A program made the position numbers and the translations under genes. This document shows positions 1,096-28,788 of a stretch of DNA of 64,000 nt, one piece after another; the first letter of the stretch is position 1; every line of letters starts with the position of its first letter. Origin of the DNA: Macrostomum lignano. Its lineage: Eukaryota. The stretch is taken from NCBI GenBank assembly GCA_002269645.1, contig NIVC01000237.1, positions 1 to 64,000 on the forward strand. Direction: 5' to 3'. The notes under the pieces are model-generated. The model saw only the letters and a program-made list of their open reading frames with translations, did not search any database and was not told the origin of the DNA.

Positions 1096-2682
1096 AAATG
1101 TGGATGTTCAATGTGATGTGAATTTTGATAAAAACTTTCACTGCACTCGCCAAGCTCCCGGATCATTTCGTACTTGCACCTCGATCAGGATAGAACTGAC
1201 AACCCATAACAAATGTATTTTGCCAAAAAAGATGGTAGCAGAACTCCCGAATCAGGCATCGAGTGCATGAATTGTCTGCTTCTTCAGTTTATTTCCCCAC
1301 CAAGCCAGCAGCCGCAATCCACATGTACAGAGCAAGCAGCGCCTTCACCATTCCCTGCAACCCAGAGAGTAAAGCGAGAATAAGCTTTGCCGCAGCGATT
1401 AAGATCTGTCAGAGCTGTCAGTGAGCCGGGCCTCACTGGCCTGCACATCGCTGGGCTGATTGGCGCCTCCGGCTTACAGGACGCTGCACCTGCGGTATCT
1501 GCGCCTAGCGTAGTCGGCCTCATCTCCGGCTTCGTCGGCCGGCACCTCGATGGCGGCAGCTGAAAAGGACGCAAATGTTTTCAGAGTCCATAATGAGTGA
1601 CAAATCGATGAGTTACCAAATTCTCACTAAACTACTGATCGATGTCTCTCTTACCTGTCATAGCCAGGACGAGCATCGCGGCCACAAAGGCTTGCACTTG
1701 CTTGTAGTTCAGCATGACTGCTTTTGGGTTTGAGTTTCTTTGGCTTGCTAAGTGTGGTGTATAGCTTGAGCAGAAAGTAATTTGCCGAGTTGCAAATATT
1801 AACAACAATTATATACACATAAGGGACAGGGAGAGCTACCCCTGCAGGGCTCAGTTCACGTCAGTGTTTCCACCAGAGCCAGCTGCAAGCAAATCATGAG
1901 GGAATTCAACTCACTTTGCTGCTGCGGTGGAGCGCAGATCGTGGGTGGCGGGTGGCGCCGCTCGCCTTTGAATCGATGGTGGCGACTCTACTGGCCACCA
2001 CTGCATAATCATATTGCTGAGTATGCCGAAGCAACACGGGGCTGAGCTGGCTTGATCAATAACCTCGGTTTTCTCTAAGCTCTCGGGTGCATTGTGAAGA
2101 CACTGTAACAGCCATTTGCTTTGCTGGGAGCTGCTATGAGAAGGGTCGCTGCTTTGAGGGGGGGGTGTTTCGCTGCGGTGCGGAGTCCTCCAGCGGGATA
2201 TCCGCGACATGCTGGTAGCGCGTGAGACCAGCTCAGCAATTTCTTGCGATCGTAAATGCCGACCGCATGGAGTACCAGAGAAGAAATCTGGTTCGTGAAA
2301 ACTGACACCATTCACGCTCTGTCAGGTGGGGGCGAATTAGCCAACAAATGGGAAGCCAAATTACTCTTGGAAGAAAAAGCTTTTTCTGCGGCGGCATGCA
2401 CTGTTAGACAGCTAACGAGTGCTTAATGAGATCCTGGCGAATTTACATGAATGCTTGCAGCTGAGGCTGAAACTGGAAAGCTGATACTCAAAGATATCAA
2501 CATGGAGTTCTAATAATGTTCTAGTTTAGTACTCCATGGCTTTGGCTTGAATCGATTCGATATTTGTGTGAGTGAGTTGAGGGAACTTTATTCCTATTCA
2601 ATGGGAGCGAATTGGCAAATATTTTTTGCTGGGTAAAGCAAATTAAAAACAAACTGCCTGCCACTCCAGATTCTCTCTATGG
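1096..2682 (-). repeat. Segmental duplication arm A (contains peptide gene copy A)
   Basis: Near-identical reverse complement of 11274-12853; largely a direct copy of 13509-15015; only scattered SNPs. Confidence 0.9.
1474..1715 (-). CDS. Small secreted prepropeptide, copy A (48 aa; exons 1655-1715 and 1474-1559)
   Basis: ATG at 1715, 61-nt exon, 95-nt GTAAG...TTTTCAG phase-1 intron, 86-nt exon ending TAA; translation MLNYKQVQAFVAAMLVLAMTAAAIEVPADEAGDEADYARRRYRRCSVL; upstream TATATAA and downstream AATAAA on the same strand. Confidence 0.75.
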
Positions 2683-3171
2683 TGTAGCGAGTGAATTAGA
2701 ACGCAGTGGAATCATTATGTGGAAGCAAGATAGAAAGGTTGTAACTCTCGGCTCGGCTCGACTAGCCTCGGCTTTACACCATTTTACCCTCGATTTTGAA
2801 CAAGGAAAACTTCGAAACTGACAAACTCCTCTTCAATATTGACACTCTATGGTCGGGCACTCAAAATCTAAAATCAATATCGACAGATCAAGCTTCAATT
2901 TTGACAAACTCTGGTTCAATTTTGACAATGCACGTTTAGTCAACTTCTCCTGGGAGAATTCGGTAACAAAGTAATCCAATGAAAGCCTGAACGGGGCTGA
3001 AGTGAGCTGTGCAAAATCAGCTTATTCTGACTTTGCTTTTTGGATCTACAAGTATTGATAAAATTTATTTTTCTCTATCCTTTACACACACAGACTAAAA
3101 TAGCCTGACTGGTTGGGCTGCAAAGTCCGATTCTATTTTGACAGAGTTGCTTCAAAACTGACACTCTATGG

Positions 3172-3561
3172 CATGGATGAATGAATAGAATGGATTGCTA
3201 TTCTGGCTCTGGCTATTTTCGTTTTTGACTCTTTTGCATCCGGTTCCCCCCCGTGCCTTTTCATTGGTTGATGATTGCCATAGACAATTTTCGGCCTTCG
3301 CCCCTTTCTTTCGATGCACAAGCGCAAAGAAATGAGAATGTCAGTTACTTGCAGAGAATATCGAGCGCTCGTAGGTCTTCCCCCTTTATTTCAAAACACG
3401 AGCGAAAGCGCTTGTGCATCGAAAGAAAGGGGCGAAGGCCGAAAATTGTCTATGGCAATCATCAACCAATGAAAAGGCACGGGGGGGAACCGGATGCAAA
3501 AGAGTCAAAAACGAAAATAGCCAGAGCCAGAATAGCAATCCATTCTATTCATTCATCCATG
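3172..3561. mobile_element. hAT-type MITE (390-bp hairpin)
   Basis: ~155-bp arms starting CATGGATGAATG; 8-bp TSD CTCTATGG (3164-3171, 3562-3569); the opposite foldback arm shows the empty site. Confidence 0.85.
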
Positions 3562-3769
3562 CTCTATGGTTTGTGTACCCAAAAAGTCCGCTTCATTTTT
3601 GACAACTCCGAATCAATATTGAACAGTTTACAATCGATTTTGACTAAGACATTTTTTGAAAGAGATTTAGACAATTTTTACTAAGATTTCTCTCTTGAGT
3701 AGGGGGGGGGTACTTGCTATTTGGGAGAGGGGGTACTACGAGTACATGTATAGGAATCTTTCTATCCAG

Positions 3770-4195
3770 GTATGCTTGCTATCTGGGTGGATGTTTGCTA
3801 CCTGGATGATGCTTGCTATCTGCAATATGCTTGCTATCTGGGGGATGCTTGCTATCTGGGTGGATGCTTCTATCTGGGTGGATGCTTGCTATCTGGGTGG
3901 ATGCTCTCTATCTGGGGGATGCTTGCTATCTGGGTGGATGCTTCTATCTGGGTGGATGCTTGCTATCTGGGTGGATGCTTGCTATCTGGGTGGATGCTTG
4001 CTATCTGGGTGGATGCTTGCTATCTGGGGGATGCTTGCTATCTGGGGGATGCTTGCTATCTGGGTGGATGCTTGCTATCTGGGTGGATGCTTGCTATCTG
4101 GGTGGATGCTTGCTATCTGGGTGGATGCTTGCTATCTGGGTGGATGCTTGCTATCTGGGTGGATGCTTGCTATCTGGGTGGATGCTTGCTGTCTT
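3770..4195. repeat. 19-bp minisatellite (GGATGCTTGCTATCTGGGT)n at the centre of the foldback
   Basis: About 22 tandem units; explains the spurious ORFs 3695-4234. Confidence 0.95.
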
Positions 4196-5044
4196 GGGAT
4201 GTTAAATGACCGGCCTTTTGCTAGAGTCCCTTGAGAGAGCAGGGACTCTAGCAAGCATCCCTGGCTAGAAAGATTCCCATACATGTACTCGTAGATACAT
4301 GCAGCCAGTACCCCCTCTCCCGAATAGCAAGTACCCCCCCCCCGCAAGAGAGAAATCTTAGTCAAAATCGATTGTGAACTGTTCGATATTGATTCGGAGT
4401 TGTCAAAAATGAAGCGGACTTTTTGGGTACACAAACCATAGAGTGTCAGTTTTGAAGCAACTCTGTCAAAATAGAATCGGACTTTGCAGCCCAACCAGTC
4501 AGGCTATTTTAGTCTGTGTGTGTAAAGGATAGAGAAAAATAAATTTTATCAATACTTGTAGATCCAAAAAGCAAAGTCAGAATAAGCTGATTTTGCACAG
4601 CTCACTTCAGCCCCGTTCAGGCTTTCATTGGATTACTTTGTTACCGAATTCTCCCAGGAGAAGTTGACTAAACGTGCATTGTCAAAATTGAACCAGAGTT
4701 TGTCAAAATTGAAGCTTGATCTGTCGATATTGATTTTAGATTTTGAGTGCCCGACCATAGAGTGTCAATATTGAAGAGGAGTTTGTCAGTTTCGAAGTTT
4801 TCCTTGTTCAAAATCGAGGGTAAAATGGTGTATTTGATTGATACAGTAACGAGAAATAGAGTATTTGTCTATGGTCAAAAGGGTTGTAGCTTATTAATGC
4901 TACAAGATACTCCCCCCTCCTAGATGAAATACAGTACATGACTATGCTGTAGATAATTGGAGACAAAAAAACTGGTTTGAACAGTGCAGGGGAACGAGTA
5001 GGCAATCAATGCAGAAGCTATAGGTCTATCGGTTAAAATATGGT

Positions 5045-27618: not shown

Positions 27619-27764
27619 AATCAGTGGTCGCAGTGCGTGACAACGATTGTCTGGCATATGCATATGCAGTATAGAGTAGGCGGCCGGTAGGCGCTGCCGG
27701 CCGGTAGCCGGCAGCCGGTAGGCGCTCGCCAGACAATCGTTGTCACGCACTGCGACCGCTGATT
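27619..27764. mobile_element. Small hairpin/MITE-like element
   Basis: ~36-bp inverted arms ATCAGTGGTCGCAGTGCGTGACAACGATTGTCTGGC around a GC-rich loop; no TSD resolved. Confidence 0.55.
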
Positions 27765-28074
27765 ATTTATCCATTGTTCGCTGATTTGTATCCATCCCAC
27801 TCACAGTGCGTATATATCTACTACTGCCGTCGTCGCTTTTCACGAACCAGATTTCTTCTCTGGTACTCCATGCAGTCGGCATTTACGATCGCAAGAAATT
27901 GCTGAGCTGGTCTCACGCGCTACCAGCATGTCGCGGATATCCCGCTGGAGCGACTCCGCACCGCAGCGAAACCCCCCCCTCAAAGCAGCGACCCTTTTCA
28001 TAGCAGCTCCCAGCAAAGCAAATGGCTGTTACAGTGTCTTCACAATGCACCCGAGAGCTTAGAGAAAACTGAGG

Positions 28075-28260
28075 TTATTGATCAAGCCAGCTCAGCCCCG
28101 TGTTGCTTCGGCATACTCAGCAATATGATTATGCAGTTATTGATCAAGCCAGCTCAGCCCCGTGTTGCTTCGGCATACTCAGCAATATGATTATGCAGTT
28201 ATTGATCAAGCCAGCTCAGCCCCGTGTTGCTTCGGCATACTCAGCAATATGATTATGCAG
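28075..28260 (+). repeat. Tandem triplication of a 62-bp segment upstream of peptide copy D
   Basis: Three exact units starting at 28075, 28137 and 28199; single copy in arms A-C. Confidence 0.95.
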
Positions 28261-28546
28261 TGGTGGCCAGTAGAGTCGCCACCATCGATTCAAAGGCGAG
28301 CGGCGCCACCCGCCACCCCACGATCTGCGCTCCACCGCAGCAGCAAAGTGAGTTGAATTCCCTCATGGTTTGCTTGCAGCTGGCTCAGGTGGAACACTGG
28401 CGTGAACTGAGCCCTGCAGGGGTAGCTCTCCCTGTCCCTTATGTGTATATAATTGTTGTTAAATATTTGCAACTCGGCAAATTACTTTCTGCTCAAGCTA
28501 TACTCCACACTTAGCAAGCCAAAGAAACTCAAACCCAAAAGCAGTC

Positions 28547-28788
28547 ATGCTGAACTACAAGCAAGTGCAAGCCTTTGTGGCCGCGATGCTCGTCCTGGCT
28601 ATGACAGGTAAGAGAGACATCGATCAGTAGTTTAGTGAGAATTTGGTAACTCATCGATTTGTCACTCATTATGGACTCTGAAAACATTTGCGTCCTTTTC
28701 AGCTGCCGCCATCGAGGTGCCGGCCGACGAAGCCGGAGATGAGGCCGACTACGCTAGGCGCAGATGGCGCAGGTGCAGCGTCCTGTAA
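28547..28788 (+). CDS. Small secreted prepropeptide, copy D, Trp variant (..ARRRWRRCSVL; exons 28547-28607 and 28703-28788)
   Basis: Identical to copy B including the intron, except TAC>TGG at codon 42. Confidence 0.75.

Follow-up and report, generated by a model that had tools for sequence, protein, structure and literature searches.

What does a small spliced gene encode when it occurs four times, in alternating orientation, within one stretch of the Macrostomum lignano genome? The window analysed here is the whole 64,000-nt stretch NIVC01000237.1:1-64000, and its bases 1-11781 are 100% identical to locus L002 (bases 1-11781). An earlier note, made from the sequence alone, had proposed that it holds a hidden four-copy gene for a 48-aa secreted prepropeptide. 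We confirmed the spliced gene, its exon structure, and its transcription. Our favored explanation, with a rough probability of 0.55, is a lineage-restricted, multi-copy, dosage-amplified gene for a small secreted prepropeptide.

At the gene level, the four copies lie where the earlier note had placed them and are intact on splicing: c1 at 1474-1715 (-), c2 at 12236-12477 (+), c3 at 13808-14049 (-), and c4 at 28547-28788 (+). Each one is a 242-nt gene core that gives a 48-codon open reading frame (ORF) and a stop when spliced. The proposed architecture of a TATA box, an ATG exon, a 95-nt GT-AG intron, a second exon, and an AATAAA signal was present in all four. TATATAA is located 100 nt 5′ of the ATG (12136 in c2, 28446 in c4, and on the minus strand 1815 in c1 and 14149 in c3), and AATAAA 181 nt 3′ of the stop (12658 in c2, 28969 in c4, 1293 in c1, and 13627 in c3). 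The intron reads GTAAGA...CCTTTTCAG (TTTCAG end), and that of c2 presents 38% GC and a polypyrimidine-CAG end. The features are listed below, with c2 in full (CDS: coding sequence; UTR: untranslated region).

12136..12142, plus strand: TATATAA of c2, ~28-34 nt 5′ of the start of the transcript-derived model (12170)
28446-28452 (plus), 1809-1815 (minus), 14143-14149 (minus): TATATAA of c4, c1, and c3
12170..12296, plus strand: exon 1 of c2, with a 66-nt 5′UTR free of upstream ATGs and CDS 12236-12296, from M1 to base 1 of codon 21
12297..12391, plus strand: intron of c2, with its junction found in GenBank proteins and in the independent ML2-assembly model A0A1I8FGA5
12392..12685, plus strand: exon 2 of c2, with the stop at 12475-12477, a ~200-nt 3′UTR, AATAAA at 12658-12663, and a putative poly(A) site
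1266..1781, minus strand: c1 transcription unit, CDS 1715-1655 + 1559-1474; GenBank BOX15_Mlig001779g10, partial
13600..14115, minus strand: c3 transcription unit, CDS 14049-13989 + 13893-13808; the CDS part of GenBank model g4
28481..28996, plus strand: c4 transcription unit, CDS 28547-28607 + 28703-28788, carrying Y42W; the 3′ part of GenBank model g2

The encoded peptide is MLNYKQVQAFVAAMLVLAMTAAAIEVPADEAGDEADYARRR(Y/W)RRCSVL, with W in copy 4 only. This Y42W change (TAC>TGG) is the sole coding difference among the four copies of the window and consists of two adjacent substitutions, at 12455-12456 in c2 coordinates or 28766-28767 in c4. It is private to this c4, since the more diverged homeologous c4 on NIVC01004420.1 keeps Tyr. 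The c4 promoter is also slightly different, with a 1-nt insertion between the TATA box and the transcription start site and a 62-bp unit repeated three times upstream.

The gene turned out not to be hidden, as had been claimed: all four CDSs are already contained in three GenBank/UniProt models (BOX15_Mlig001779g10, g2, and g4), all of them annotated as 'hypothetical protein'. The 48 aa match M. lignano BOX15_Mlig001779 g2, g4, g7, g10, and g12 over their full length at 100% identity in GenBank and UniProt. The exon junction ...LAMT/AAAIEV... is present in PAA87287-9, PAA91356-7, and PAA47528, and an older model from the ML2 assembly (UniProt A0A1I8FGA5, source name 'Secreted protein') has the same junction. 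The GenBank annotation of Mlig_3_7 was built purely from RNA-seq and transcript assemblies (StringTie/TACO, de novo assembly, TransDecoder), and transcripts overlapping annotated repeats were removed (PMC5730564). Because the annotation derives from such data, both transcription and the exact exon junction are experimentally backed, and we hold it as nearly certain that the gene is real and spliced. The g10 model (c1) is a 5′-partial ORF that reads through the 5′UTR from window 1781 (= 12170 in c2), and the partial model PAA87288 reads through it from the point equivalent to 12170. From the g10 start, it follows that the transcript 5′ end lies ~28-34 nt after TATATAA.

The public models of this family are nonetheless chimeric. 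The 95-aa g2 joins the c2 start to the c4 5′ end through a non-canonical junction and looks like a concatenation artefact. Models g4 and g12 open with 'MTAFGFEFLWLA...', the antisense of this gene's 5′UTR and ATG in the neighbouring head-to-head copy. This antisense piece is joined via GT..AG to an acceptor in the sense 5′UTR (cacttAG/CAAGCC or ctcaAG/CTATAC), and g7 uses the acceptor cacttAG/CAAGCC too, from an exon 3.3 kb upstream. The read-in pieces of g4, g12, and g7 are located as follows.

28505-28548, minus strand, joined to ~14082, minus strand: in the window
10001-20767: in locus L005
8382-8397: in locus L003

We interpret the antisense pieces as artefacts of fold-back cDNA that mapped to inverted copies; alternatively, they may reflect real antisense or read-in transcription. 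The practical lesson for annotation is to take the 48-aa ORF as the true product, and not the models that join two copies (g2) or start in antisense 5′UTR (g4, g12).

How did the four copies arise? The 642-nt alignment spanning each of them gives 99% identity, and self-BLAST delimits duplicated units of 1.3-1.7 kb, longer than the gene and 98-99.5% identical. Because a single unit was copied four times, the recurrence of the TATA, splice, and poly(A) signals is not independent evidence. Orientation alternates along the window: c1 points leftward, c2 rightward, c3 leftward, and c4 rightward.

1094..2682, minus strand: c1 duplicated unit, whose upstream arm picks up again at 10862-10873, past a long terminal repeat (LTR) retrotransposon
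11141..12853, plus strand: c2 duplicated unit, head-to-head with c1 and tail-to-tail with c3
13509..15146, minus strand: c3 duplicated unit, from self-BLAST
27837..29166, plus strand: c4 duplicated unit, with a shorter upstream arm and the 62-bp unit three times

The tail-to-tail c2/c3 pair has arms of 1.64 kb with 99.5% identity and a unique spacer of 732 bp. The head-to-head pairs were split by later transposon insertions. Between c1 and c2, the 8.2 kb are the LTR retrotransposon (2683-10857), whereas c3 and c4 are separated by ~12.7 kb of decayed transposable element (TE) fragments, including a PolB_2 piece and a reverse transcriptase (RT) piece. Right after the retrotransposon, the c1 arm resumes: 10862-10873 is the reverse complement of 11260-11271. 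Therefore, the retrotransposon landed in a pre-existing inverted duplication, and its insertion is younger than the c1/c2 duplication. The 62-bp unit stands three times at 28074-28261 (100% identical) upstream of c4 and once in c1-c3.

2683-10857, minus strand: apparently complete LTR retrotransposon in the c1 upstream arm; LTRs of 166 bp, 99% identical, TG..CA; 4-bp target-site duplication (TSD) ATGG
9136-10059, minus strand: retrotransposon gag (DUF7041)
6659-8143, minus strand: retrotransposon protease (PR)-RT
5045-6574, minus strand: retrotransposon integrase (IN)

Nested in the left LTR, we observed a 2,054-bp foldback-type element (2777-4830) flanked by duplicated TA. Its arms are perfectly (100%) inverted (2775-3171/4436-4832 and 3171-3325/3408-3562), and its core is a 19-bp minisatellite (3772-4194). 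It could be a real foldback or miniature inverted-repeat transposable element (MITE)-like DNA element or a PacBio palindrome artefact.

Such palindromes raise the question of whether the four copies are themselves an assembly artefact, through over-expansion or palindromic PacBio mis-joins. We consider it very unlikely. Perfect (100%) palindromes do lie nearby (2775-4832), and hidden polyploidy is known to make M. lignano genomes hard to assemble. Against it, the copies can be told apart by site-specific differences that form a mosaic, as gene conversion would produce, and their spacers are unique. Moreover, the c1-c2-c3 order recurs on NIVC01000089.1, which is 99.8-99.9% identical and has private variants of its own; a third contig, NIVC01004420.1, carries the c4 region and aligns collinearly with window 15.4-42.2 kb (93-98% identity). 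Finally, the LTR retrotransposon, flanked by its own TSD, lies in just one of the arms.

The gene copies were found only in this local array and on the homeologous contigs. The BOX15_Mlig001779 identifiers reach at least g12, and this numbering is what ~3 versions of the locus with ~4 copies apiece would give, in keeping with a neopolyploid genome.

Several other repeats accompany the array. A sub-repeat of ~355 bp occurs once upstream in each of c1-c3 (2200-2551, 11403-11754, and 14533-14884, respectively), and a fourth copy, 90% identical, in the c2/c3 spacer (12863-13217) hints at an older duplication round. Inspection of its alignment showed no obvious terminal inverted repeats, which is uninformative. 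In the TE mosaic between c3 and c4 (15200-27800), we identified part of a type-B DNA polymerase (PF03175; 19090-19818, minus strand), part of an RT (22108-22449, minus strand), and an inverted repeat of 266 nt (16208-16473/26947-27212, 98%). Within the mosaic, the 916-bp segment 17322-18238, containing a 155-nt inverted pair, is missing from both other locus versions (L003, L005). We rejected a Maverick/Polinton reading of 16-27 kb, where only the PolB fragment and an unrelated RT fragment were found, as in a decayed TE mosaic.

Is the 48-aa ORF the product of the transcript? It starts at the first AUG of a ~421-nt spliced mRNA, after a 66-nt 5′UTR lacking any ATG, and has a purine at -3. It displays coding-type periodicity, with G at codon position 1 in 23/48 codons and 77% GC at third positions, and the intron (38%) and 5′UTR (41%) contrast with it in GC content. 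The ORF is intact in 8/8 copies from three locus versions on three contigs. The divergent paralogue A0A1I8FGA5 shares an identical N-terminus over 26 residues. In its exon 2, after removing two homopolymer insertions, four of the five inferred substitutions are third-position and silent in this frame; this pattern rests on back-translation, is not significant once ascertainment is allowed for, and is suggestive only of coding. A longer 79-aa ORF in the +1 frame (mRNA nt 164-403, window 12428-12667) overlaps the CDS end and the 3′UTR. We rejected it, since it starts at the fourth AUG, the paralogue variants are non-synonymous in it, and its frame is not conserved in A0A1I8FGA5. Altogether, the 48-aa ORF is quite likely translated.

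A different view takes the ORF as incidental to a repeat-like, TE-like, or inverted-repeat hairpin-RNA locus. If its arms (1.6 kb, 99.5% identity) were transcribed convergently or by read-through, non-coding or small RNAs would be its main products. The tail-to-tail c2/c3 pair with its 732-bp spacer would suit such a locus, as would the TE-dense region and the antisense 5′UTR pieces that g4 and g12 join via GT..AG to the neighbouring inverted copy. In addition, conservation of 98-99.5% extends over the entire 1.3-1.7 kb unit and is therefore uninformative on coding. However, these antisense pieces resemble fold-back cDNA artefacts, and the unit has no TE protein domain or long ORF. The copies are local only, and the transcript survived the annotators' removal of repeat-overlapping transcripts. 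No terminal repeats or TSD turned up at the unit edges, where no search was aimed specifically at TE termini (terminal inverted repeat, LTR, or TSD), and the TEs inserted beside or into the units, not vice versa. Considering as well the canonical promoter, intron, and poly(A) architecture, the first-AUG ORF, and its codon-type periodicity, we regard the non-coding alternative as improbable. The narrower possibility that the region is an internal part of a transposon, which the earlier note had named as a refutation, was rejected: 11100-15200 contains no ORF >134 aa and no TE domain, 8/8 ORFs are intact, and the copies are not dispersed.

The peptide probably is secreted, judging from its sequence. 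By inspection, its N-terminus shows the n-, h-, and c-regions typical of a cleavable signal peptide, in line with the signal that the earlier note had proposed. Residues 1-23 comprise an n-region MLNYKQVQ (K5), an h-region AFVAAMLVLAMT of 12-16 residues, and a c-region AAA. Mean Kyte-Doolittle hydropathy reaches 2.1-2.9 in 9-residue windows over residues 7-24, and the predicted cleavage AAA/IE has Ala at -3 and -1, before I24. The N-side flank has a charge of +1, against -6 for the 15 residues flanking it on the C side. Under the charge-difference rule, such flanks predict a cytosolic N-terminus and a luminal C-terminus, which is signal-peptide behaviour. A 48-aa chain leaves the ribosome before the signal recognition particle (SRP) can act, so import would be post-translational; small pre-proteins use the Sec62/63 route.

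The predicted mature 25-mer is IEVPADEAGDEADYARRR(Y/W)RRCSVL, that is, IEVPADEAGDEADYA followed by RRR(Y/W)RRCSVL; acidic residues number 6 and basic ones 5, and there is a single Cys. The bipartite charge that had been proposed was confirmed: residues 24-38 hold 6 D/E and no K/R, and residues 39-48 hold 5 R and no D/E. The furin-type processing and the Tyr sulfation invoked in the earlier note fit less well. There is a single strict R-X-R-R furin motif (R41-(Y/W)42-R43-R44, with the cut before C45), and it lies inside the basic part. This site and an Arg-rich mature tail are incompatible, because a cut between R44 and C45 frees CSVL only and destroys the tail. Sulfation of Tyr37 is doubtful, given acidic neighbours on its N side but three Arg directly on its C side.

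The same basic residues could be mere processing sites of a small prohormone or neuropeptide-like precursor. In this case, convertases at RRR and RR and a carboxypeptidase would release an acidic 15-19-mer (IEVPADEAGDEADYA or ...RRRY), possibly Tyr-sulfated. The signal peptide followed by RRR and R-Y-R-R motifs, the D/E-rich context of Tyr37, and the nature of flatworm prohormones, which are short, often lineage-specific, and without detectable homologues, agree with it. Nevertheless, the only Gly (G32) is internal and none precedes a basic site, leaving the peptide without an amidation donor, and protein database searches gave no similarity to annotated neuropeptide precursors. The three Arg right after Tyr37 disfavour sulfation, and at least four copies per haplotype with a TATA promoter better match a bulk secretory product. 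We therefore consider a prohormone unlikely.

The C-terminus also has a feature that had been overlooked: RRRYRR-CSVL (RRRWRR in c4) is formally a perfect polybasic CaaX(Leu) box, C45-S-V-L48. A polybasic CaaX with X = Leu is the geranylgeranyltransferase I (GGTase-I) modification and membrane-targeting code of Rac and Rho tails and requires a cytosolic C-terminus. The peptide could then be a prenylated, membrane-anchored micropeptide, geranylgeranylated in the cytosol, with the hydrophobic N-terminus as an anchor or with non-classical export like that of fungal a-factor-type lipopeptide pheromones. The tail follows the Rac1/RhoA/K-Ras4B layout, having a Cys at -4, a2 = Val, X = Leu, and 5 Arg among the 6 residues before the Cys; by a rough estimate, such a motif at a random C-terminus is very improbable, and it is kept in 8/8 copies. 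Moreover, a 48-aa chain is freed before SRP engages, and its C-terminus may be transiently cytosolic. On the other side, the N-terminus resembles a cleavable signal (12-16-residue h-region, AxA), and the +1 and -6 flanks predict a luminal C-terminus, beyond the reach of prenyltransferases. This predicted topology argues against prenylation, despite possible transient exposure to the cytosol during post-translational targeting. As to the 'polybasic' run, convertase sites or the cationic half of a secreted peptide would explain it just as well, and we know of no animal example of a prenylated secreted peptide. The prenylated micropeptide is, in our assessment, improbable. Dual targeting, where Cys45 is geranylgeranylated via the polybasic CaaX and the product then exported –an animal counterpart of fungal a-factor-type pheromones, amplified in a hermaphrodite whose sexual conflict has been much studied– is a long shot. 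Nothing indicates an unusual mechanism so far, and this dual signal-peptide/CaaX reading is the sole truly surprising possibility.

We return to the favored secreted prepropeptide. This would be an orphan two-exon M. lignano gene with a TATA-box promoter, its four almost identical copies arranged locally in alternating orientation. From each, an mRNA of ~420 nt would arise, with the 48-codon ORF opening at its first AUG. Entry of the product into the secretory pathway is most likely and, given its shortness, would probably be post-translational. Signal peptidase would remove residues 1-23 after AAA, and the resulting 25-residue peptide may act intact, as a disulfide dimer, or after cutting at the RRR/RR sites. 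The high copy number and the focused TATA promoter point to an abundantly made gland or epithelial effector. By analogy with known systems, a host-defence or mucus effector is a tentative suggestion for its role. A mating or seminal peptide is conceivable, with a lower likelihood.

Several points weigh against this explanation. The signal peptide was called by inspection. With 10 residues, a single Cys, and low hydrophobicity, the basic part is short for a classical antimicrobial peptide (AMP); no clean processing site divides it from the acidic half; and the C-terminus fits a cytosolic prenylation motif too. The selection test (8 copies, 3 contigs) was without power: the CDS shows one codon change and the non-coding sequence a few changes, and the high similarity of the paralogues precludes dN/dS. 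A word-indexed search with the 48 aa against 5.8 billion proteins retrieved no homologue outside M. lignano, so comparison between species offers no evidence of coding constraint. In 8.3 million full texts, neither 'Mlig001779' nor the peptide strings were found, and no expression-pattern, peptide, or phenotype data turned up. The earlier note had also overlooked that the 'amplification' lies in a neopolyploid, highly duplicated genome, where many genes have multiple copies.

A full HMMER scan of 1.84 billion representative proteins retrieved M. lignano entries only, and A0A1I8FGA5 as a query matched itself alone. The supplements of PMC5816591, PMC5730564, PMC7336406, PMC5946080, PMC5977470, and PMC12896417 contained neither 'Mlig001779' nor the peptide strings. 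No Rfam family or tRNA was detected anywhere in the window. In these sequence comparisons, we found no homology to any described family, and we claim no family membership. The gene models are already public, and the uncharacterised peptide would belong with the small orphan secreted prepropeptides.

Beyond the array, the window contains unusually dense, strand-asymmetric micro- and minisatellites (31700-58800) and a further ORF with a recognisable domain.

32519-32878 and 42535-44382: (TCTG)n
51616-52168: the complement, (GACA)n
37054-40557: 22-bp unit x157
34783-36020: 35-bp unit x35
54879-56779: 38-bp unit x50
from ~32420: annotated cation-efflux gene model, extending into the satellite region
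60669-61544, minus strand: 291-aa ORF with a KY-like Ig-like (immunoglobulin-like) domain (PF23265, E = 5e-11), probably a host gene exon

If the peptide is made and secreted, it would represent another taxon-restricted, dosage-amplified effector peptide in a model flatworm with RNA interference and transgenesis, and its role –microbiome or defence, mucus, or mating– would be quickly testable. Its promoter is compact, with the TATA box ~100 nt before the ATG in an upstream region conserved over ~1 kb, and could be used as an expression tool. Apart from these prospects, the gene is an unremarkable orphan in a highly repetitive, polyploid genome.

When compared to known systems, the peptide resembles several and matches none completely; in layout and genomics, it comes closest to the taxon-restricted host-defence peptides of Hydra. 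Within the species, the prostate-limited seminal-fluid candidates Mlig-pro1-76 include many short orphan proteins with a signal peptide (Weber et al. 2018, PMC5977470). We found no link to them: the peptide, DNA, and identifier strings are absent from the supplements of that study, which uses a different transcript ID system, making the absence uninformative.

The npp/spp prohormones of planarians are likewise short signal-peptide precursors with multibasic motifs and are often lineage-specific. The M. lignano peptide differs in its multi-copy palindromic array and in having no amidation Gly and no database similarity. Of the pairing of basic sites with a C-terminal amidation Gly that marks neuropeptides, it has RRR and RR, and no Gly stands before a basic site.

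With the polybasic CaaX tails of Rho/Ras proteins (Rac1 ...KKRKRKCLLL, RhoA ...RRGKKKSGCLVL), it shares Cys at -4, an aliphatic a2, X = Leu, and 5/6 basic residues upstream, and its 48 aa fall within the length range of fungal a-factor precursors. Unlike these, it combines the lack of a GTPase domain with a signal-like N-terminus and flanks that predict a luminal C-terminus.

Finally, the Hydra arminins and periculins, the frog-skin dermaseptin-type precursors, and the alpha-defensins offer a comparison at the level of layout. The M. lignano peptide presents no sequence similarity to the arminins, dermaseptins, or defensins, its cationic part has 10 residues and one Cys versus ~30 residues or multiple Cys, and no discrete Lys-Arg junction separates its halves. 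A cationic mature part in the AMP size range (~12-40 aa), amphipathic or with several Cys and freed at a defined site, was not found in it. Despite these differences, it shares with them a predicted signal peptide followed by bipartite charge, clustered near-identical paralogues, and the lack of homologues outside the lineage. Hydra AMPs combine a signal peptide and bipartite charge with clustered paralogues and are taxonomically restricted, lacking homologues beyond their genus, and very highly expressed (PMC10945409); the promoter and copy number of the M. lignano gene suggest a similarly high output.

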